A stretch of 61,960 nucleotides of DNA, counting the filler, from Platydemus manokwari (lineage: Eukaryota), in the NCBI GenBank assembly GCA_037951405.1. It is 5 parts of 5 records of this genome, joined end to end, with 100 filler letters (N's around TTAATTAATTAA, not from the genome) between each part and the next. Parts side by side here need not be neighbours in the genome. Positions count along the whole stretch, not along the records: positions 23,000 to 36,484 come from JBBMOY011708066.1; 4 more parts are not named here. The stretch is one strand, 5' to 3'. A model generated the notes under the pieces. It did not search any database. It saw only the letters and a program-made list of their open reading frames with translations, and had not been told where the DNA came from. The position numbers and the translations under genes were made by a program. Of the stretch, positions 4,038-36,484 are shown in pieces (the stretch's first letter is position 1; the number at the start of each line of letters is the position of its first letter).

Positions 4038-4778
4038 TGTAGGTTGCAATTTAATTATAAATAATAATAATAATATAATAGATAACAATAACGCGAATAT
4101 GCTGCAAAATATAATTATAAATCAAATACAAAATTAGTTATAATACAAAATTAGATAACCAAATGTATTACTATAATTATGTAAAAACAGAACTTGCGAA
4201 GTGTGGCTCACTTAACCAGAGGGTAAGATTCAGGATACGAGTAAACCGTACAATGAATAAAAGCTATTAAAAAGGCAGGAGCAAAACGAAGAGAGTTTTA
4301 TTTAATACTGAATCTATCGACACGGTATGAAAATATCGATACCCCGCTGACTAAATCGATTGGCTTGTGGAGATTTCTATGCTTGTTTTGTAGCTGATTA
4401 ATACTGCTTGCTGTGACTAATTTTCTCTGACTGATATACAATCGTAGTGTTTCTGCTAGGTGACTGACACGTGGTTATTTGCAGTTAACTTTTTGGCGAT
4501 TCGCTCCAAATCTCCAGCTTCTTATATATTATTTTCGTTATGCCTTTAACCAATCGCGATTTTTCTTATTTCTGGGATTTTAAAATCCTATTTTTGTTTT
4601 CTGATCAATTTTTGTTATTAATAAATTCTATTTTTAGTTTCTATTTTATTTTTGTAATTATTAAATTCTATTTTTAGTTTCTATTCTATTTTTTGAATTT
4701 TTAATTATGTGGTTATGTTTGTGGGTGTATCATGTTATTTTGTCGCTTTGTGAGTCACTGTGGGTTCGGATCCTAACA
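4038..4778 (-). mobile_element. LTR-like repeat (left boundary uncertain)
   Basis: On the minus strand it begins TGTTAGGATCC, followed by short degenerate tandem repeats (~4585-4710), a CCAAT-like box, TATATATAAG and a downstream AATAAA. No matching TSD was found. Confidence 0.35.
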
Positions 4779-22999: not shown

Positions 23000-23819
23000 T
23001 AATAATGATATAAATAAGGTGGAATAATAATAAAGATATTGGCAAAAAATGAAAAATAAAAAACCGTAATAAAGTCGATCAAATTAAATAAATAAAAATA
23101 AAATAAAAATTTTAAGTAAATTCCAAAAAATTATTAAGTAAGTCACATTTTGAAAATTAGGCTGAATATCTAGAAACAATAAATAAGATTAATAGATCTA
23201 AGATTGCTCGAATAAAATACACTCAACATTCTCCTTTTTCTATTCCATCGTAAAAATTGGACACACTGTGATAATGGTTTCAATATAATTATGTTTTATC
23301 TATCACATCATAATAAATAAAACATCAATTGACATTATTGATTTCATTGAAAAGCATTAAGTATTATGGGCTAAATTAGTTTTGTTCATACAGTGGGTCT
23401 GCATCAAAAAATTTTTAAACATTTGTGGAATCAAAGGTAACAAAGGTTAATTTGTAAAATATAATTTGCTTGTTTATTTATGGGAAATTTAATTAGAAGG
23501 TATTCTGTAAGAAGGAGTTTCTAGTGGGTATTAACAGAATTGTGAAAGGGCTGAATTTTCTTCTTATTTGATCAATAACTTGCAATCACAGTTTGACCTT
23601 TCGGTGTATTTGACAACGTGTATATTATATTTTAAAAAAAATACATTTTAATTAGAAAAGAAGCTCGCTCATTCCAGGTCCTAGAACATGATAAAGAATA
23701 AGATAATCAAAAACTTAAGTTTGCTGACGGTAAGAAACTTAATAAAATTATTAATGCTAATACTTGAATTGATTGGGTTGGACTGAAAACCATACCACGG
23801 ATTATATATTTGAAGAATT

Positions 23820-24200
23820 ACTGTTGAATTTCAGTATTTATACATCAGGACCAATAGCCCAGTTTTTCCTGGTGCACTTCTTTATCCTTTTGAACTTCCT
23901 ACAAAGTCCTTTACTTCGAATAACATTTTTTTAACATTTTCCAAATACATCCAATCTCTCTTATTTCAATCTTTCTTTCCCTACTTTCTCTTTCAATTTT
24001 CTTTCGTATTTGCTGTGGTCTTAAGATCTAAATCATATTTCTTTAATGCTGCTTTCCTTTTTTTCGCCCTGTATTTGCTTAACATTCTTTCTACTCAGTT
24101 TTTAATTGATCATAGTCCTAATGAGCTCTTATCTTCTTCAAAGCTTCTATTTAGACTCAGATTTGGACTCAGATTTTTTGAAATAGGTCTCCTCAATAAC
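23820..24200 (-). mobile_element. Gypsy-like integrase C-terminal remnant
   Basis: Frameshifted translation KKYD...RDWMYLENV...RSKGLCRKFK...IGPDV*ILK resembles the GDxVxL...KF...GP region of Ty3/Gypsy integrases. Confidence 0.3.
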
Positions 24201-27200
24201 CACTTATTATGAAAAAAATATTATTTTAAAATACTCTTATTATTATCTCACAAAAGTATGTAATATAATGTTTAATTAGTGATTTAGTTGTTTTAAATTA
24301 TTATTATTTTAGGGAATTAAGTGGTAATATTTTATCATGACTATCAATGTTTTAACAAACCTTGACAGCTTTTCTGTCACATAGTTTTGTAATAAATAGT
24401 GAGTTGTGCAAACATGTATTTGAACTAATTTATTTTGTATCCATTTTTGCATTCATGTGTAATATAGAAGAGTCTCATATAAACTAATATTTGCCATATA
24501 TCGATAACTCCAATCGAAAATTTCTAAATAAAAACATCTAATAGAAGTCGATCATATGTAATGCTCTCAAACTCTAAATGTCGAAACAGACATAGATATT
24601 GCATTTAGAAGCCACAAGAAATGTGTTATTATTTATTGAACCTGCTGAATAGCACATGTACAGTACATGAATAGCACATTTGGTCAATAGAATTTATTCA
24701 ACAATTATTTGATGAGCCAGACTTAAAAGAAACTCCGCAGAACCAATGTTTGGAGACATTTACGAACTAGTCTAAAAACCAAATCAACCTCCATTCAGAA
24801 TAGTATAAGCAGGGTATTAAAAAGGTATTCAGAAGTTGGCAGTCTTAGAAAAGTTCGTCAACTTCTTAATGGCTATTTCATATATGCTTCTACCCATCGA
24901 ACAATTATACAATGGTTACATTTTCATTTGAAAGAATGCTTGGCCACAGTAGCTTACAAACACATTGATCGGGGAAACATAAGTCAATAAAAGTGCCTAA
25001 ATGATGCCGTGTCTAAAAAATTTAAGAGTTCAAAACCGTTCAATAACTTTGCTAGCTATACAATTTGTCGGAGATTAATTCCTTAAGGAAGTTCATCATC
25101 ACATTAATGCCGTATTCAATCCGGTGATGAAAGAGATGGATTAAACATATATTATATATTAAATCATTACATCATAATATTGGACCCGGTCATGATGAGT
25201 CATAATGTCATTCTTCTAAATCCATTTTTCCAATTCTTAAACTTAGAGACTCATTAGTTCAATAATATACAATGTGTTTTGCATACCACATATTGTAGAA
25301 TCAGAACTAATGATGATGAGACACATAATGAGACACAGTCAGCATCCAGTCAAGATATATATTCTTCTTGTGGAAATTTCGAACCCCTTGCTAGTTCAAA
25401 TCTATAGAAAATTAAACAGTCTAAGCATTTCATTTCTAAAAGAAAGGTAAACTTTCAGAATGACGAATCAAGGGCTAATCGGAAGCTCTCCCAAAATAAA
25501 AGCACGATTATATGAGAAAAAATTGATCGCTGGATTGAAAGAATAGGAAGTGAAGATTCTAGTAATGTAATTACTGATCTAAATGACTTTGAAATTCAAA
25601 ATTGGAAAAAAGATTGTAGATTCTGTAATATCGGTGATGATAATGTTGATAAAAAATGGGAATACCGTGACGGAGAATTGGAAACTTTTAAATTAATGTG
25701 GAATTAAAAATTATATTCATCAAATTACACCGATTCAGATTTTAAGAAGTAATATAATTAATTTGTATTTCTAGGAGACAATAACCGAAATATTGATTTA
25801 GTAAACATTTTGAGATTTATGTTGAAAATTGAGTAGGAAATTTAATTAAAGTGAAGTTAAATATGTTTTTTAGAGTCCGGGTTATTATTAATAGAAAGTA
25901 GATTTCAGAAGGGGAAAATCAATTTTCGTATCTAAATCAATTTTTATGATTTATGGTATTTTGTCCTAAAATTACTTTTTTGTAAAAATTGAAAATCGAT
26001 GTAAAAAGGAAAAAAGAAATTCCACAGAGATGATGACACATGTAATTACAATTTTAAAAGAAGAATAATCGTATTAGTTTAGAATAATCGTATTTGTTTA
26101 ATGTGCTGCTATTTGATAAATCTATCATTTAATTACAAAATTTTCATATTCCCAAAATGTATTCTGTATAAAAATGATACATTTTAGGCGGTTAATTGTT
26201 TATAAGAGAATTATACGTTTCAATAATATTTTATATAAAATTTTGAATAACAAATATATCTAAAATCCTAACAGTGCGAAAGCGAAGATCTCGTTTTATG
26301 TGTTACAGCAAGAAAACCAGTAAGAAAAAACTATACTTTTGGTTTACGAACATTTTTACAACAATTTTTACTACTTATAGTTACAAATAATAAATTTAAT
26401 GAAACCAGTTAAATATAGCGATAAGAATGTTAATGAAAATCTTTTTGGAAAATTGTTTTTTATATTCGTGAATTTCTTTCACTTAATTAAAAAATTTTAA
26501 TTTACACAAAATAAAAACTAATATTAAAACGAACTAAATAAATTTTATATAAGAAATGTTGTCTGATTAACATTAGTAATGAATATCGATTAATTATTGA
26601 GAATGCGATGGTTTATAAAAGTAAGTAGAGATTAATTTTTTCGCAGTTATTGCAATTTTTATATTCTACATTATTTATGATTCATTCAAGAAAGGGAACT
26701 AGTTTGTTTATTTTGGAGCTGATTTTTATATGTTAAAAAGTTTTTACTGACAATCGAAAACTTTTCCTGATATGTAGATTTACTATTTCATGATTTTGCT
26801 TTAGTTTTTTATTAAGTAATTTTATTGTATTCATTAACTTAAGCTTTCAAACAACTCTGTTGTGTGAATAATAATGAGAATAATATGAAATAATTAAGTT
26901 AGAATTCATTAAATAATCACGCAATAACTGATATCAATTTCAAAATTACGGCTTAATCTCTATCAATATTACTACAGTTAAAGAAATGGTAATTGTTTGT
27001 CTGAAATCTTGTAATCGCAATTAATTCCTTTGTATTAGAAATGATTTTATAAATTTTTGTGTTGTTGATTACAAAGCCCAACGTATAAATATATAAAAAT
27101 TAAATCCGTATCATTAAAATGTTGGTGGTAAGTAATTAAAAGAGTAAATAAAGCATTTACATTTTTTTTTAATTGTTGTGATTGTTGGAAAATTAATCTA

Positions 27201-30200
27201 ATAAAGAAATTATTTATCAAATTATTTAATTTTTTGTAATTTTGTAGTATGTCTTCTATTCAAGTTAAATTTAAATATACTTTACCTGAAATGGTAAAAC
27301 CAGCATTAATAGTACAAATGATTAATTATCACACATATTAAGTAAACTGTAAATGATGAACGACTATAATTAAATTAATTAACCACTAATAGTTATGGTT
27401 ACTAATTAATAAGATTTAATAATGACAAAATTTAAAGTGCTGAATAAAATAAATATTTGTTTTGGAATTTACATTTAAAAATTTTCTTGTCAAATGAGGA
27501 CTTGGTCCTCCATATCACCTTCAATTGAATTTTAAAGAGAAAAAATTAAATTTCAAATTTTTATTCTAGATTATCAATAATAACGGTTTCGTGACTTCCT
27601 TTGTGGATTATTTGAACTCATTTGGTGTTCTGAAATCAGTCAAGAAATTAAACTGGTTTTATGCTATTTATCATCGATTCAATCCTTAAAATAATTATAA
27701 TACAAACCTTTCTTTTTGATAATCTTTTAGAATTATTAAATTCGTTAACATTGATAATTATCAAACTTATTAATTTCAACATTTTGTAAAACTCACATCA
27801 ATTGCATTTAGCTATTTAGATTTATTAAAAGTTGGAAAGAAAAATCACGTTAAAATTGAAATTTATTATATTTTATTAGACTTTTAATATAATCGATTAT
27901 TTCTTTCTTTACGTTCATTCAGATCTTGTAAGTGTATTCTAAATCGAGCTTTCAATATTTAATTATTATTTTAAATAATCTATTCAAAATTAATGGAATA
28001 ATTTTAAAATATTTTCATTTACAAGCTAAATAAATAATTAATATTAATATTTCTCGGTAAACATTAATTGGTAATTCTTTAATTAATCTCATAAACAATA
28101 ATAATCTTCAAAATCATAAACCAAGATAGCTTTAATATATTTTAAGAAATCTATTCGTTTTTTTAATTCGAATATTATCCATCCTGTGAATTAAAGAATG
28201 CCGGTCAAATCTATTTGTTTTAACTCAGGAGTTGATCGAAAATAAGTGTTGATATTTTGAGAAATAATAGTTTATAATAAATTTTCATAAATTGAATTTC
28301 AATTGATATCAAAAGTAAAGAACGATTTTTCTAATTGATTTAATTGGAGAAAATTATTTCATCATCAATTTTAACTTGTTAAAATTTCTGAAGTAGGAAT
28401 CTAGTCGAATAAAATTTTTTAGATACTAAATCATTCCATTTATTTAGAAATTTTATTTTTCCTGTTTCCTATAATTTTCCATCGATAAAAGAAAAAACAA
28501 AACGACGAAAAACTAATGTTTGGTTAATATTTCATAGACTGATTACAATTTTTGGGTGTAGACTAGTTGTTTCACTGATCATTTTCTTGATTTCGCAAAT
28601 GATAAATAATTCATCGACATTGTACAAGTCTTACAAAATTATTTTCTGCCCCTGTGGTATAAATTTTTTTGTTAATTTTCTCATTCGTTTTAATTTTGAG
28701 TTTTTCAAATGATTTTACAAAAATGAATAGATGACTTTAATTTATTAGTTTTGTTCGGATGAAATCAATAAATATGTATTAATTTTTTGTTTTATTATAA
28801 AGCTCGTTTTACAATTACAATCCATACATGATTCCAGTTAAATTATAATGTAAATTTAAATTTGTTTTAGTAGATTTTGTGACTTAAAATTTATAAATAT
28901 TTCAAACCAAATTCAGAGATTATCTGATATCAATTGTTTAATGTTTCTTTGACGGTGGAGTTTAATAATTATTATTATAAAATTTGCAGTAATTATAATT
29001 AATAATAAAGTCATTAATAGAAAATCATTAATAATATATACGCACATTATTATAAAATATTAATAAAAATAATAATAATCTTAATTAAAATGAACGCAAA
29101 TGTACCATAATATATCTTTCAAAATTTTCTCTAAAAAGCATAAAAATTTAAATCATATAAATTTACTTCAAATTACTCTCACTACCTATCAAGCATAATG
29201 ATAATAAAGTACAAATCTATCCATCACTGGGAAATGGAAATTCGAAAACCATTGATTCGAAAAGTTTTCAAATAGTATTTATGATTCCACACATTAAAAC
29301 AAACATTATCACTATCATTTTTTCCCTGTTTCCCATTATGATTAGCGGGTTAATTGTATTCAATGTTTTCCGCGTTGGAAAAATTTGAGGAATTGTGTCA
29401 GTGAAAAAATGAATTACAATTCTACAGTTGCAGAACATAAGAAAGACAACGAAACGACATGCATGATTGAATAATGTATGGGATATCGATTATGGAATAT
29501 CGTTAATTTTTTTAATGAGAATGTGTTTTAAATTCGTTGAGATATTGATTAATAGTTGATAAAATTAACCCATTAATGATTTTAATGGATTGTATTTTGT
29601 TTTTGAATAAATATGTGGTTCAGATTTGAAATTGTGTTTGAAAATCAGAGAGATTTCTTTTCTATTCAACTCTCTGTGTTGACTATAGCATTTCAATAAA
29701 TTATGATGAGAATTAATTTTTATGGGAATTTATCATTCCATTCGTGATTCTGAGATATTTATAATTTAGTGCACAAAATATTCATCTATAGATTTTATTT
29801 ATATTTCTGTATGACCGAAGTAATATTCTTTAACCAAATTTTTATGCCTACTTTCTAAAGCTAATTATAATACTTAATAAAATGGAATTAGTAGAACTAT
29901 TGATCATTTTCATCAGTTTTCTATTGTCATAAGATTTGATTGATTTTTCCAGAAGAAATTAGTGCAGTTGGGGATTATGCTATTTTGTCTATTTATATGA
30001 AACATTTATTGAGATATGCCTTTAATGAATCTCATTAGATTATTGTTGCATTATTTCGTCAAATTACAGGGTGTGGCATCATTATTACAAATCGCTACAA
30101 AAACCTAATGCTGATTTTTATATACTGCCTCTCAGTGTATTAGATGTAAATCTACGATTACATTATGAGGAAAAGCATCAATTCATCTAACTCTACTGAA

Positions 30201-31143
30201 AGTGAAGCGCTGCCATCCATTCGGCTTATCAACAAAGGCTTATTCTATTGACTCGTGGTAAATTATTTCACAATGGCCATTATATCTTCAATAGGTGTGT
30301 CTGTACTTAAATCGATTTTGTAATAATAATTCCTGCAGTCATTTTCAATTCAATCTGTGTTTGTGTGTGTATGTGCTCGCTTCTATGTTTACTGGAATTA
30401 CAATTATTCACAACCGTAATCATCAGACGGTTAACAGGAGGTTGTTGACTGACAATCTATGGTTATTGGATGCAGGCTGAAATCCGCAGTTGAAAATGAG
30501 TGAATTTAGAAAACTGTCGATAGTGGGTGTGCTTGATGATTCATCAATATGTACGCTATAATGGAAGGACAGAGACTGCAATATTGTGTGTCTATAGCCA
30601 GGGAGAGGAAAACTGAGGAAGTTAATCGATCCTGCTTCCTTTCTCCTTCCACGAGTTGAGTGGAGTCTCCTATGAAAATCCATGTGTGGTTAATAATAAG
30701 ATTGGCAGGAATTTTGTGCATATAGGATTGCAAAGCAGAAGGAAAACAACTTCAACGACTAGTTCAATCGCCAGTCACAAAATATTTTATCATTGGTATA
30801 GAATTGTGATTGTTGACTATTAGATGTTAACCAGACTTGAGGAATAAACGGGGTTAGTTTTATTGATTTACCATTTGTACGAAATGTTTCAGCTTTATGA
30901 TTATTAAATTTTCACAAATAATTCAAAAAAAAATCAATATGAATAAATTTGTTTATGGTTGTGCGTTTTAATCAGACATTGTGTAGAGCACAAATCAGTA
31001 ATTATGCTTGTGTGTTGCGCACAATTTTTCATTAAATTTTAATGCTTGAGAAATGTATGAATTTGTTAGGTGCATTTGAAACAACATACAGTCATTTGAT
31101 AATTTATAACATTCGATGATGATGATGATTGCTATTAGAATAA

Positions 31144-31577
31144 ATGCCTAGAAGCGTAATGCAGAGGTCTTACAAATATCGATGTCTCGACCCAGCCTGT
31201 TCCAATATCACGCTGATAGATTCCAAATGGCATCAACATTTACAGAAATCTCATTCAAATGTCGATCCAACTGAAGTGAAATATGTTAAAGTCGAATATA
31301 GATTGGGACCGAATGGACCATGGCAAATGATGCCGCTCGGTTCGGAATTGTGGAATAATAGTTTTTTGGTAACGAATATTGACCATTCGGAAAACGGGGA
31401 CCAAGAAAGCAACACCAATGAATCGTCACCGCAAAACGGTCAGGATGGATCGTATAATCGGAGTGTATTTCTTGGCGAATACAATGGTGATGGGGAAAAT
31501 TCTCAACTCAGCACGGAAAACGTTTCCAGTTCTAAGAACGATGCGATATTTTCAGAAATTTCCAAAATAGAAATGAA
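31144..31577 (+). CDS. C2H2 zinc-finger exon (coding exon 1 of the predicted ZnF-TTF fusion gene)
   Basis: Clean ORF with YRCLDPACSNITLIDSKWHQHLQKSH (C-x4-C-x12-H-x4-H) followed by an S/N/E-rich linker. Its apparent stop codon overlaps a strong donor GTAAGA at 31578 (phase 2). Confidence 0.8.
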
Positions 31578-32930
31578 GTAAGATTTGCGTATATATTTTT
31601 TCGATAATAATTATATTGATTTATTAATTTTAATGATTAAATTGTCTGATGACACGTGAAATTATCGGATAATCTACTGTGTATAGAGTTGATTTATGTC
31701 TATTTTTTGATATTGATTGATGTTCAATTGAAAATAACAATTTTCACATCCATTTTCAAACAATGCTTACCGTGACAGCTTTGAACATTTTGTGATGATT
31801 GATATAGATGATTTCAATACCGAATTTATTTTTGCCGGTTCAATTGCATGACTGTTGTTCATTTAGTTCGTTTTGTTTTTATTATTATATTGAATTGAAG
31901 AAAAATGTCGGGAGAAAATGAATTTTCGCTCATTTCAAATGTTAATTGGTGAGATTATAATGTTAATTATATTTTTATGATTATTTTGAGATTAATTATA
32001 ATTGATTATGGCTGAATTTATTAGATAATGTTTTATTTTTTTATTAATATTAACATTGTTTCTTTATTATTATCAATCAGTAGTGATAGAAGCAGTAGTA
32101 TATTTATGTTGTGTAGCGCTAATATTAACTTGATTATAATAATTAACTTATACAAGGTACGTGTTTTATGTTGTTAATGGGTTGAATTCAATTTATTAAT
32201 CGTCATTAACTATTAAATTTTCTGACACAACCTAAAGACTGTAAAAAAACTGAAAATTATGTTGGTTATATGATGGGTGCTGATAATATGTATTAATAAG
32301 CTTATTATTACAATTTAATTTTATCATCTATTTGTTACCGAGATATGGTTTTCACTTTCTCTCGGAGATAAATTTCGTCACTCATCTTGTCTATTTTTAT
32401 AAATCTATGATATCCACTTATCATCCAATCTTCACATTTTTAGCTGCTGGTGGGTTGTATCATGAATGCGATTTATTTTATAAATAGATTTATTTAGTGG
32501 TGTGTTTGAAAATACGGTAAATTCATCTTAGACGATTTCATGTTCTAGTCATAGATTTAAAAATGATTAAAAGCACATTTAAGCAACTCAATTCAATGAT
32601 AAATCAGCATCAAAATATGAAAATGAGCTATTATTCGTGTGTAGGAATGTAAACATTTATTGGAAATGTATGTTATATATATATTTAAATAAAAATCAAT
32701 TATTTCTGTTGTAATATATAAACACGAAAAAGTATTCTCAAGCTATGATATAAATCAAAGAAATATTTAATAAAAAATTAACTTAACTAATGAGTATGCT
32801 ATAAATCATTTGTTATTGTTTTCAATGATAATTTAATTTTCTACTCAAACCATGTGAACTTGATCTGAGCCGTTAAAGGCCATTAAAGTACCCCATTTTC
32901 TACTTTAAAACAGATTCTTTAATAAAATTA

Positions 32931-33185
32931 TGAGGTTTATATTAAAATTTACATAGAATTAAAATGATTAAAAATTGAGCCAAAAGATATTTTATAAAAA
33001 TTATATTAAAAGTTAATATAGTTAATATATCCTTTAAAAAAACCTTAAACTCTCAGTTTTAAAATTATTAAAAGTAAATTTTAAATTTTTTAATTAAAAA
33101 AATAAAGATAAAATGTAAAAATCGTTGCATTATTATATTAAAATTAAAAATGAAGACAAATCAGATTGAAATAAATTTATATTTA
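32931..33185 (+). repeat. Dispersed AT-rich repeat, homologous to 40350-40628 in inverted orientation
   Basis: Shared blocks TGAGGTTTA, TTGAGCCAAAAGAT, CTCAGTTTTAAAATTATTAAA and ATGAAGACAAATCAGAT. Confidence 0.7.
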
Positions 33186-35200
33186 ATATTTTAAAATATG
33201 TTTCGATATTGATGTATTGGCGAATAGATTTTTTGTTCTGTTGTAAACATGGCTTTTGATTTGAATATTAAAAATGAAGAAATTTTGGCAACCAACAGAT
33301 CTAAGAATATCGATTGTACAACAAACCAATCTTATATAGATGAATAATTTATTTAACCTTCATTCGTATATCCGCTGAAAGTATAATAATCACAAAGGCC
33401 GGTTTTTATAGCTATAAAACAAACCTTCTGATAATTCAATTTTAATTATCAAACGAACAATCCTATCAACGACATTCATCTCAATCTTATTCAATATTTG
33501 ATAAAAGATAACAGTCATGGAAATCTCCATTTCAATATCAGTATAATTATCAAAATAATATGTTCTAGATTTATTATCATTTTTATCAGTTATTAAAATT
33601 TAATTTTGCTGATCGATTTTGATGGTTGTCATCATCATTTCCTATATTGAAGCCAAATTTATAATACTGATATTGTCATTCAGTTCATTACTAAAAAGAC
33701 GAATTCATTTTATCTTCTATTGACAATTTGATGACGTAAAATATAAGATTGCTTTTAATAAATTACTTGATAAATTCCATTTATGAAATCCAATCGATGA
33801 TAACGTTCTTTACAAATGAATTTTTTTATAAATTTATGGCTATTGGAATAACGAAAAAAATTATTTACTTATTCCTGTTAATAGTCAGTTAAGTAATTAA
33901 ATAATTTTTTTATTGGGATTGTTTAAATGAAGTTCAATTTTGTTAAATATTACCTTGAACAGCATAGTATTCACGGTTTATTAAGTTGAAAATATTATAT
34001 ATGAATCCAAAGAAAAATGTTTTCCCTTCAAATCTGTGAAAAATGAAATCCGTGAGAAATGTTTGTGAAGAGATTTTTGTAAAGAAAAAACTGTGACACT
34101 CGGGCATGGTTTAATGAAATTCATCTTCAATCACTTAGGAAACGATTGAACTACTGTGCATATCTCCACATCATGATGGATATGCATCATTTGTTTGGCA
34201 AACCAATTTTCCTAGTGACATCACGAAATTATGACTGTAATTACCAAGAGACAAATGTCGATCTGTATTTGATTAAAATTGCGCTTGTCAATTATATCCT
34301 TGTCAAAATGTTTTTATTTTGCTTTTCATTGTTTCACAAAAAAAACTGTATCCTCTGAACCAGTCAGTGATCATCGATTGGTATGATTTCAAATTTTTCT
34401 GAACACGATCTTTCAATATTTCCTTCATTAGTATACTCGAAGGAAATATCGGTAAATTGTGGTAAATTAATTAGTAGAATATAATTAGGGAATTATTACA
34501 ATATAATGATATTATGGTTCGAATCCGAAAAATTAGAGTTTATCCACTTGATAGTGTGCCATATATATTCTCAATTAAACAGTGAATCCAATGAGAATTA
34601 CTCGTTTTAAATAAATAAAATCACTTGTTCAATTTTACTCTCTAAGATTATTAAGTTTTAAATTATAGTCTCTACCAAAATAAAAGTCATTTTTTCTATA
34701 ACACTAACCCATCTTATTCCCATTCGACAAACACTTTAAATCTATATTTTCCATTACTTCAACCGCTCAATGATTGATGTAAAAATATTTCGTTACTTAA
34801 CCTTAAACTTACTGAATATTTTTCATTTATAACTTCAATTATACCTTCACATTTCGTATGGATTTATTTTTATTTTACACAATAATTGCATAGTAATGTC
34901 GTTGAGAAGTTTGTTAGGAATTTAGCGTACAGTTTTGTTCATATCAGCTTTACAAAGTGTTCTGTGGAGAGGATTTTTCATAAGATTGAAATTTCTATCG
35001 TTATTTGTGTTTCGAACAAAATATTGCTCTGATTTTTATTCTGTTTTCACAGAATTCGATTAAATTTAACACCGAAGGATTTATACTTATCGTTACCAAC
35101 ATTTATGTAGCATAGAAATGCTCAAATGGTACAAGCTAGGCTTATTAAATGTTTATTTTAATATCATTTGGCAATTTTCATTAATATTATTCTTAACTAG

Positions 35201-35702
35201 TTCGACAACTGGTAATTTCGTTAAAACGTTGCTTGGTCAATCAATCAAATCAGAATCAGTTCACCATATTGAACCAAATGATCCATATCAATTAACTCAA
35301 CAAAAAATCACCGCATCTGCCATTAGTCTTCAACTAAAACTGGGACCCATGCAGCCTTCTCCCGCCGAATTTCAGTATCCAAAAACACATAGGCCAACAA
35401 GCGATAGTTTACTTTGCTTTAATCCTACGTGGTTTGAACGGAAATTGGCGGATGGATCTAGCCAGCCTCGCCCATGGCTCTCATACAGCAAATGTCTGAA
35501 TAAAGCATTTTGTATATATTGTATTCTATTTGGTAACAGCGCTAAAGTATCAGAATCATGGACCAAGACCGGATGGGATACATGGAATAATGGAAGTCGT
35601 GATATCAAAAGACATGAAGAATCTCCGCAACACAGAGCTGCAGAATTGGCAAAAGTTAAAGCCATGTCAGGATTTCACAGTCAACACAACAGCTTATTCC
35701 AG
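35201..35702 (+). CDS. TTF-type zinc-finger exon derived from a hAT transposase N-terminus (ZMYM1/THAP12-like); coding exon 2
   Basis: FNPTWFERKLADGSSQPRPWLSYSKCLNKAFCIYCILF...WTKTGWDTW...IKRHEESPQH carries the WLxYS..FCxxCxLF...W...HExSxxH signature. The acceptor TTCTTAACTAG ends at 35200 (phase 2) and the donor CAG/GTAGTT starts at 35703 (phase 0). There are no stops or frameshifts. Confidence 0.85.
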
Positions 35703-36096
35703 GTAGTTATTCATATTTATTAAACGATTTTTTCTGTTTATTTTTTACACATTACTTTCACACACTTTGAAAATAATTTCATAATATTAACAAAATGTCA
35801 TGATTTCTTTTTTGCCTTCACACTTCCATTTATATATATTTTTCATAGCAAATTAATAAAAATAATTTATTTTTTTGGCATTTTTTCATATTTAATCTTG
35901 AAGTAATTGAATGAAATAATTCACTTTTTCTCCATTTTGTTCATAATTATTTGATTTGGAGAAATATATATTGATTTTAGATTTATAAAATATTCCATTA
36001 TCAAGTTACTGGAGGGCTTCTTGTTTTAAATATTACAGCACAATATTATATTGTATCTGAATATTCATGTTTATCCATGTTTTTTCAATAATCCAG

Positions 36097-36186
36097 GGTG
36101 ACAATTATCAGCCAATATTTCAAGAGCTGATCTCACAGAAAACATTTTCACAGGAATCAAATATTATTTATCAATTTGATGACTAA
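36097..36186 (+). CDS. Predicted terminal coding exon 3 of the ZnF-TTF fusion gene
   Basis: Acceptor TTTTTCAATAATCCAG, then a phase-0 open frame GDNYQPIFQELISQKTFSQESNIIYQFDD*. An AATAAA lies at ~36323. Confidence 0.6.
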   Translation, partial: GDNYQPIFQELISQKTFSQESNIIYQFDD

Positions 36187-36392
36187 TTGATGGATTTATT
36201 ATATCATATGGATGATTAGAAAACAATACTTCATTTATATATGTGATTCTTCAAAGATAATTATCATTTTCATGATTCAGATATCATATTTGATTTTTAT
36301 AAGATTGTGTGCATCAAATATTAATAAATATAAATCTGACTTTAAATATGTCGAGAAATAATAATAATAAGTTATGATAAATTTTGACCTAT

Positions 36393-36401
36393 TATTATTA
36401 A

Positions 36402-36458
<57 letters not shown>

Positions 36459-36484
36459 CATCATCATCATTATTATTATTATTA
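36393..36484. repeat. (ATT)n/(ATC)n microsatellite at contig end
   Basis: Long ATT run with a few ATC units. Confidence 0.95.

Follow-up and report, generated by a model that had tools for sequence, protein, structure and literature searches.

Two open reading frames (ORFs) that lie 3.6 kb apart in the genome of Platydemus manokwari (GCA_037951405.1) can be joined exactly in frame, which raises the question of what kind of gene they would form together. A sequence-only reading had proposed a fusion, in which a C2H2 finger gene is spliced to a captured hAT finger. The window, that is the whole stretch of DNA at its length of 61,960 nucleotides, consists of five joined parts, and the piece analysed here is the 13.5-kb part at positions 23000-36484 (JBBMOY011708066.1). 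All exons discussed below are on the plus strand.

Coding signal and the join between the two ORFs

The first ORF (31144-31581, 145 aa) begins with an ATG that directly follows an in-frame TAA, and the second spans positions 35118-35723 (201 aa). Both far exceed chance length. The stop probability in this DNA of 26% GC is 0.0855 per codon, and over the whole piece in six frames one expects 0.005 open runs of at least 145 codons and 9e-6 of at least 217 codons. The fragments that form exons 1 and 2 (145 and 167 codons) contain zero stops and zero frameshifts, and their GC content of 40% contrasts sharply, at the predicted junctions, with the 21-25% of the DNA between. This 3.6-kb interruption (31578-35200; 25% GC) contains no ORF, Pfam match or repeat structure and may represent intron 1 or else an insertion that occurred long ago.

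A single GTAAG-type donor and a single pyrimidine-preceded acceptor are available for the join, and their phases match, for which the prior is 1 in 3. Exon 1 ends in phase 2 at GAA/GTAAGA (31577/31578), where the stop TAA of the ORF overlaps the donor. Exon 2 begins after the acceptor TTCTTAACTAG/TTC (35200/35201) and ends at the donor CAG/GTAGTT (35702/35703), and a proposed exon 3 has its acceptor at AATCCAG/GGT (36096/36097). The joined model of 434+502+90 nt gives 341 codons plus a stop and reads ...KIEM-N-STTGNF... at the first junction. Re-checking the coordinates, splice-site letters and 341-codon sum of the sequence-only reading found all of them correct. Splicing of the 3.6-kb intron presumably joins the two ORFs. 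A search of sequencing runs for the locus listed one run of DNA type, probably the source assembly, and no RNA run; a contig search for encodings of both ORFs found nothing on record. Pfam searches of the remaining open runs of the 13.5-kb piece, as well as Rfam and tRNA scans, gave no matches.

Origin of the two zinc modules

Exon 2 (35201-35702) encodes the end of a linker followed by a CCHH finger of the TTF or zf-C17orf113 type, with ligand codons at 35511, 35520, 35613 and 35631. A phmmer search with exon 2 returned 656 matches (best E 1.9e-23), and the exon keeps all invariant residues (R90, W92, Y95, S96, C104, C107, G124, H138 and H144), including the zinc ligands C104, C107, H138 and H144. 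Its Atlas placement is with DUF4371/ZMYM1-like clusters (0.97). The score against PF25431 (zf-C17orf113) is 21.5 bits (E 2.2e-4), below the gathering cut-off of 29.5, and this family is matched by 9 of the 18 aligned relatives at E<=0.01. The long relatives P0013, P0015 and the L006 ORFs carry DUF4371 and Dimer_Tnp_hAT. The finger profile had no match among PDB sequences. Judged by this homology, exon 2 encodes the TTF-type finger found at the N-terminus of DUF4371 (ZMYM1/FAM200-type) hAT transposases, and the earlier assignment of a hAT-type TTF finger to this exon is supported.

The first part of exon 1 (31144-31341) encodes an N-terminal CCHH (C2H2-like) zinc module with a beta-hairpin motif (VKYVKVEY..GPW), as indicated by homologue-conserved ligands, phmmer and an AF2 model. 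Its ligands, C14-x4-C19-x12-H32-x4-H37, fit the classical C2H2 pattern C-x2-4-C-x12-H-x3-5-H. The AF2 model of the module (pLDDT 80) predicts strands at residues 8-14 and 23-25 and a helix at 26-36, a beta-beta-alpha arrangement plus extra strands. Exon 1 matches no Pfam family at E<=1, zf-C2H2 models included, and Foldseek of the N-terminal module against the PDB found nothing below E 1. When the model is checked against profiles, exon 2 falls below its cut-off and exon 1 has no match, and both finger calls hold by homology instead.

For exon 1, this homology leads back to hAT elements. The CCHH pattern is kept in the homologues P0002, P0153 and P0154 and in the contigs L002 (517-627) and L004 (265-375), and the module matches the Gordionus protein P0002 by phmmer at E 1.8e-8. 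On four unrelated contigs the module, in the form MPR..KYRC..C..DKW..H..H, is found on the 5' side of full-length DUF4371 transposase ORFs, namely on L002 and L004 at those same positions, L006 (739-846) and L007 (533-640); in L005 it is partial, cut by the contig start. On this sequence evidence the CCHH finger of exon 1 is the conserved native first coding exon of this hAT lineage, MPR start included, and the claim that a C2H2 finger gene had been spliced to a captured hAT finger is contradicted, as the homologues of exon 1 in L002, L004, L006 and L007 are first exons of the hAT family itself. The rest of exon 1 (31342-31577) encodes an acidic, Ser/Asn-rich low-complexity linker that ends at the donor. 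The linker between the fingers is not conserved; in homologues, 70-140 aa of linker stand at the corresponding position. We point out that this first-exon module falls outside Pfam coverage and occurs, ahead of DUF4371 transposase ORFs, on contigs from several unrelated samples. The annotation of hAT elements could therefore be extended by this module.

The closest comparison for the two modules together is P0002 (XP_065318796.1), a 278-aa 'zinc finger MYM-type protein 5-like' from the horsehair worm Gordionus sp. m RMFG-2023. The spliced model is colinear with P0002 over residues 10-304 (E 1e-38), which supports the proposal that both ORFs belong to a single coding sequence. P0002 has the CCHH module and the TTF finger in identical order within one continuous, single-exon ORF, and it stops 8 aa past the finger with no catalytic core following. 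On the other hand, its overall identity to our model is only about 30%, a divergence too great for dN/dS, its linker is uninterrupted where our locus has the 3.6-kb gap, and 2.1 kb downstream of it follows a Dimer_Tnp_hAT ORF (23.9 bits, cut-off 21.4), with no core between. No synteny is shared between P0002 and our locus within +/-10 kb. In the ML tree P0002 is not sister to the finger of our locus, although the AU test does not reject the sister placement (p 0.33). This core-less derivative in Gordionus would be a second DNA-binding-only case, either independent of or shared with the gene described here. Since full-length hAT transposases and the single-ORF Gordionus protein have homologues of both modules in this order, we conclude that their combination is a native architecture and not a fusion.

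The region beyond the finger and competing readings

The sequence-only reading stated that the hAT sequence stops right after the finger. This is true of the 13.5-kb piece: the DUF4371 RNase H-like core (PF14291) gave no signal in any frame of 23000-36484, neither by tblastn with 150 relatives nor with a post-finger HMM, and the hAT dimerisation domain (PF05699) was not found in the piece, whose edge lies 782 nt after exon 2 within a (TAT)n microsatellite (36390-36484). It does not carry over to the whole gene, which may have its catalytic part on further exons past this edge. The claimed lack of TIRs likewise agrees with our search, which found none convincing within the piece; any 3' end would fall beyond it. 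A TIR search in L001 and L002 also gave nothing convincing. In L006 we observed a 17-nt candidate TIR pair without a TSD.

The 341-aa product proposed earlier is sound in its arithmetic and its intact frame; its exon 3 part is without homology support. Exon 3 (36097-36186; 29 codons plus stop) was proposed solely on GT/AG letters and 29 open codons. Joined to exon 2, it gives no rise in score on post-finger HMMs (14.2 vs 15.2 and 13.8 vs 14.2), and the join ranks 448 out of 730 among arbitrary joins. Suggestive BLAST extensions against L005-L007 were considered as evidence of exon 3 homology and rejected, having failed two HMM tests with arbitrary-join controls. If the CAG/GTAGTT donor is unused, exon 2 instead reads through into a tail, VVIHIY, followed by a stop (35703-35723). 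A SUMO site (IKSE) is indeed present at model residues 160-163, but since it sits in the non-conserved linker and the acidic tail lies in the unsupported exon 3, we give no weight to either.

We favor the reading, with a probability of about 0.55, that the locus represents the 5' part of a DUF4371 (ZMYM1/FAM200-type) hAT transposase gene, the part for DNA binding, intact and without the catalytic core; it could encode a repressor-like protein or an exapted one, or be a defective copy of young age. Exon 1 would supply the CCHH finger of the lineage itself and a low-complexity linker, and exon 2 the TTF/zf-C17orf113 finger, which is directly followed by the RNase H-like core in full-length relatives. 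The product would end 6-29 residues past the finger, so that the protein would measure about 318-341 aa and carry two zinc modules but neither a catalytic nor a dimerisation part. If expressed, such a two-finger protein could bind without cleavage either to subterminal sites in related hAT elements or to sites of the host, and could act as a truncated-transposase repressor or as a transcription factor.

Alternatively, the two exons could form the 5' end of a hAT-derived gene of full length, whether this is an autonomous element whose introns are long or a host gene domesticated in the manner of ZMYM1/FAM200, in which exon 3 is spurious, the donor at 35703 splices outside the piece, and the DUF4371 core and hATC exons lie beyond 36484. 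This is the alternative that survives best, and we consider it unlikely. In its favor, family homology extends right up to the CAG/GTAGTT donor, exon 3 has no support, and the intact ORFs and 3.6-kb intron resemble a host-type gene structure, with the piece ending in a microsatellite so soon after exon 2. However, all relatives examined show the finger passing into DUF4371 uninterrupted by an intron, nothing like the core is seen in the 782 nt that follow exon 2, and a core-less relative is present in Gordionus. Somewhat more doubtful is the reading that the locus is a host-exapted, intron-bearing gene retaining only the two hAT zinc modules and serving as a sequence-specific repressor of related hAT elements or as a lineage-specific transcription factor.

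A dead relic, in which two fragments of one hAT transposase ORF were split by a 3.6-kb insertion or rearrangement, cut after the finger, and are now unspliced and unexpressed, appears less probable again. Relatives lack introns both in the linker and past the finger, and their ORF is continuous across the linker. The 3.6-kb gap could therefore stem from an insertion, with the in-frame GT..AG join a 1-in-3 coincidence. Decayed family copies are also common elsewhere: L005 has an in-frame stop, and P0157 and P0158 have lost Cys/His ligands. The lack of the locus from RNA runs fits a silent copy. Against this, 145 + 167 codons have remained without stops or frameshifts although 8.6% of random codons are stops, every zinc ligand and family-invariant residue is retained, the ORF ends exactly on a strong donor, and the interrupting DNA is old-looking and featureless, unlike a recent insertion. 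Finally, it is very improbable that a C2H2 zinc-finger exon of the host captured the hAT TTF finger by splicing to form a lineage-specific fusion, as the exon structure itself and nothing else argues for it, whereas the homology of exon 1 to the first exon of the hAT family, with a conserved MPR start, and the intron-less occurrence of both modules in one Gordionus ORF argue against it. The apparent two-finger splice join is how this hAT lineage builds the N-terminus of its transposase, which corrects the earlier over-reading.

Comparison with known systems

DUF4371 hAT proteins combine a ZnF_TTF with an RNase H-like domain and usually carry extra N-terminal zinc fingers (Majorek et al. 2014, PMC3985635). 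Our locus agrees with this arrangement in having an extra N-terminal zinc finger and a low-complexity linker between the fingers, and its TTF/zf-C17orf113 finger has all family-invariant residues, at 28-40% identity to the fingers of 17 aligned relatives, five of which are 800-960 aa long. It differs in that the DUF4371 core and Dimer_Tnp_hAT are absent from the 13.5-kb piece and in that the linker is interrupted by 3.6 kb. Furthermore, the extra finger is of the CCHH type, whereas THAP and zf-FCS fingers are listed for the family (PMC3985635).

A SETMAR-like exon-capture fusion was considered and rejected: the partner exon is not host-derived and matches the first exon of full-length hAT transposases. 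The domesticated hAT genes ZMYM1, FAM200, ZBED5 and C17orf113 (Pfam names PF25431, PF27073 and PF14291) keep the DUF4371/RNase H-like region. Our locus shares their type of finger and possibly a host-like exon-intron structure, but shows no DUF4371/RNase H-like region.

Truncated transposases can repress transposition, as exemplified by the P-element 66-kDa protein (PMC5443660). The product predicted under our favored reading resembles that protein in keeping the N-terminal DNA-binding part without catalysis. By this analogy, as the DNA-binding part is kept and catalysis is absent, repression would be the likeliest mode of action if the protein is expressed. The P-element protein belongs to another superfamily and is truncated by intron retention, whereas here the predicted truncation would be due to loss of DNA or to a 3' end outside the piece. 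Intact, core-less derivatives with only the DNA-binding part appear in at least two AT-rich animal-like genomes, and if expressed they are candidates for self-regulation of hAT elements or for early exaptation.

Open reading frames and splice sites

Two open reading frames stand out on the plus strand of the AT-rich piece at 23000-36484 (JBBMOY011708066.1; GC 26%), namely ORF 1 (31144-31581, 145 aa), whose ATG lies immediately 3′ of an in-frame TAA, and ORF 2 (35118-35723, 201 aa). With the base composition of the piece a stop falls at 8.55% of random codons, and over six frames 0.005 open runs of at least 145 codons and 9e-6 of at least 217 codons are expected by chance. The sequence-only reading had joined these frames in a three-exon model (31144-31577, 35201-35702 and 36097-36186). 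Its junction letters are correct, that is GAA/GTAAGA at 31577/31578, TTCTTAACTAG/TTC at 35200/35201 with an acceptor rich in pyrimidines, CAG/GTAGTT at 35702/35703 and AATCCAG/GGT at 36096/36097, and our script reproduced its product of 341 codons plus stop (434+502+90 nt). Only one of nine GT sites in the final 180 nt of ORF 1 is a GTAAG-type donor (31578), and only one of seven AG sites upstream of the ORF 2 stretch that has homologues follows a pyrimidine tract (35201); their phases match, for which the prior is 1 in 3. Both large exons have a GC content of 40% vs 21–25% in the intervening and trailing DNA.

The 1.1 kb directly 5′ of exon 1 (30000-31143) has a GC content of about 34–38% vs about 22–25% farther upstream, contains no ORF, Pfam or Rfam match, and could be a promoter, 5′ UTR or subterminal region of the element. 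An open run of 132 codons at 23814-24212 (+), on a T-rich strand and with a Phe/Leu-rich low-complexity translation, is most likely a composition effect and not a gene.

The two zinc-finger modules

Exon 2 gave a sub-threshold Pfam match to zf-C17orf113 (PF25431; 21.5 bits, E 2e-4, cut-off 29.5), while phmmer, run exhaustively against 1.8 billion representatives, returned 656 proteins at E ≤ 1e-3, of which 71 reached E ≤ 1e-10 (top E 1.9e-23), with 30–50% identity across residues ~20–158. A language-model atlas grouped it with DUF4371 / "ZMYM1-like" clusters at 0.97. Aligned with 17 relatives, the window finger retains all invariant columns (R90, W92, Y95, S96, C104, C107, G124, H138 and H144), and PF25431 matches 9 of the 18 aligned sequences. 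The longer relatives bear DUF4371, the RNase H-like catalytic core, plus a hAT dimerisation ORF where the contig extends far enough. These matches, the retained columns and the DUF4371 of the long relatives identify exon 2, in agreement with the earlier proposal, as the TTF-type finger belonging to a DUF4371 hAT transposase.

Exon 1 has no Pfam match, but its residues 1–60 match the N-terminus of the Gordionus protein P0002 (phmmer, E 1.8e-8). Its CCHH module, MPR-x(5-8)-(F/Y)K(Y/L)-x-C-x4-C-x(9-10)-DKW-x2-H-x4-H, is covered by no Pfam model and recurs on unrelated contigs, where it forms a short exon ahead of full-length transposase ORFs: at L002 517-627 before the 814-aa P0013, at L004 265-375 before P0015, at L006 739-846 before a 771-aa DUF4371 ORF and then a Dimer_Tnp_hAT ORF, at L007 533-640 before a DUF4371 hAT transposase ORF, and partially in L005, where the contig start cuts through it. 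Exon 1 and its relatives share the Met-Pro-Arg/Lys start, four zinc ligands and then a "K.I......G.W.(P)Y" hairpin motif; in L002, L004, L006 and L007 an intron directly follows 'H(G/A/S)F(K)'. AlphaFold, with an 8-sequence alignment, predicts a beta-beta-alpha core with extra strands (pLDDT 80), for which Foldseek found no PDB match.

DUF4371 proteins combine a ZnF_TTF with an RNase H-like domain, usually with more N-terminal zinc fingers and the C-terminal dimerisation domain hATC (PMC3985635). Given this architecture and the presence of the module on transposase contigs and in P0002, what had been read as a C2H2 finger joined by splicing to a captured TTF finger is the native N-terminus of the lineage, and the homology of exon 1 to the first exon of full-length DUF4371 transposases speaks against a host exon as foreign partner. 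We consider it well supported, with a probability of about 0.9, that the locus corresponds to the DNA-binding N-terminus of a DUF4371-type hAT transposase and has native architecture.

Some relatives are decayed: L005 has an in-frame stop at ~1515 between finger and core (LQW*KG), and in P0157 and P0158 Cys/His ligands have disappeared from the N-terminal finger. In L006 a 17-nt inverted repeat (306-322 / 4679-4695, 94% complementary), a candidate TIR with no flanking 8-bp target-site duplication, encloses the three-ORF hAT gene over ~4.4 kb.

The 3′ end of the locus and the Gordionus relative

Searches of every frame across the 13.5-kb piece gave no trace of DUF4371 or hATC, whether by tblastn with all 150 relatives or with an HMM of the 130 residues after the finger (67 relatives). 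Family homology stops at ~35700, and the piece ends 782 nt after it in a (TAT)n microsatellite about 32 repeats long (36390-36484), which is probably why the contig stops. The claim that the hAT sequence ends after the finger thus holds for the DNA in hand and does not extend to the whole gene.

For exon 3, BLAST alignments to L005-L007 extended a few residues into it. Exon 2 was joined to each AG-preceded downstream start, then to each possible start, and scored against broad and clade-specific HMMs of the post-finger region. Adding exon 3 lowered both scores (broad HMM, 14.2 vs 15.2 for exon 2 alone; clade-specific HMM, 13.8 vs 14.2, rank 448/730), and the homology was dropped; the proposed exon keeps its splice letters, which are its sole support. 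Without it, the ORF terminates six codons past the donor at 35703.

P0002 (Gordionus sp. m RMFG-2023, XP_065318796.1, "zinc finger MYM-type protein 5-like") is a 278-aa ORF on a 54.6-Mb chromosome, colinear with the entire spliced model (residues 10–304, E 1e-38) and ending eight residues past the finger. It is core-less, with CCHH and TTF modules in the same order as at the window locus and no DUF4371 within ±10 kb; unlike the spliced model, P0002 is a single exon, and a Dimer_Tnp_hAT ORF (12974-13189 of L001, its locus on OX940785.2; 23.9 bits vs cut-off 21.4) lies 2.1 kb 3′ on the same strand. As no core lies in between, the layout looks like that of an internally deleted hAT element, with the RefSeq 'ZMYM5-like' gene as its front end. 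In an ML tree built from 92 finger domains the window finger fell in a 32-member clade (support 87/96) with P0013, P0015 and P0008, elements bearing the CCHH first exon, and P0002 fell outside; the AU test did not reject a window+P0002 clade (p 0.33), and tblastx found no flanking genes common to the two loci. A common truncated ancestor is thereby neither supported nor excluded.

Readings of the locus

We lean towards a truncated derivative reduced to DNA binding, whether exapted or just young. That such a spliced gene may be functional is suggested by two intact exons in stop-rich DNA with every ligand retained, the sharp composition step at the predicted junctions, the termination of ORF 1 precisely on its sole strong donor, and a 3.6-kb gap that resembles old background DNA rather than a recent insertion; the relatives, however, lack an intron at either position. 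With the contig edge so close, a longer gene continuing past it is a lesser possibility, and an unexpressed relic, set against the intact exons, is rather less probable again. The fusion of a C2H2 gene with a captured hAT finger can hardly be right, as the same module precedes transposase ORFs and opens P0002.

At the sequence level the finding is real; in kind it is ordinary, another N-terminal fragment derived from a hAT transposase, and its significance is modest unless transcripts or orthologues indicate exaptation. The predicted product, with two fingers but neither core nor dimerisation domain, would, were it expressed, most plausibly compete with related hAT transposases for their binding sites, as the truncated P-element transposase does (PMC5443660).
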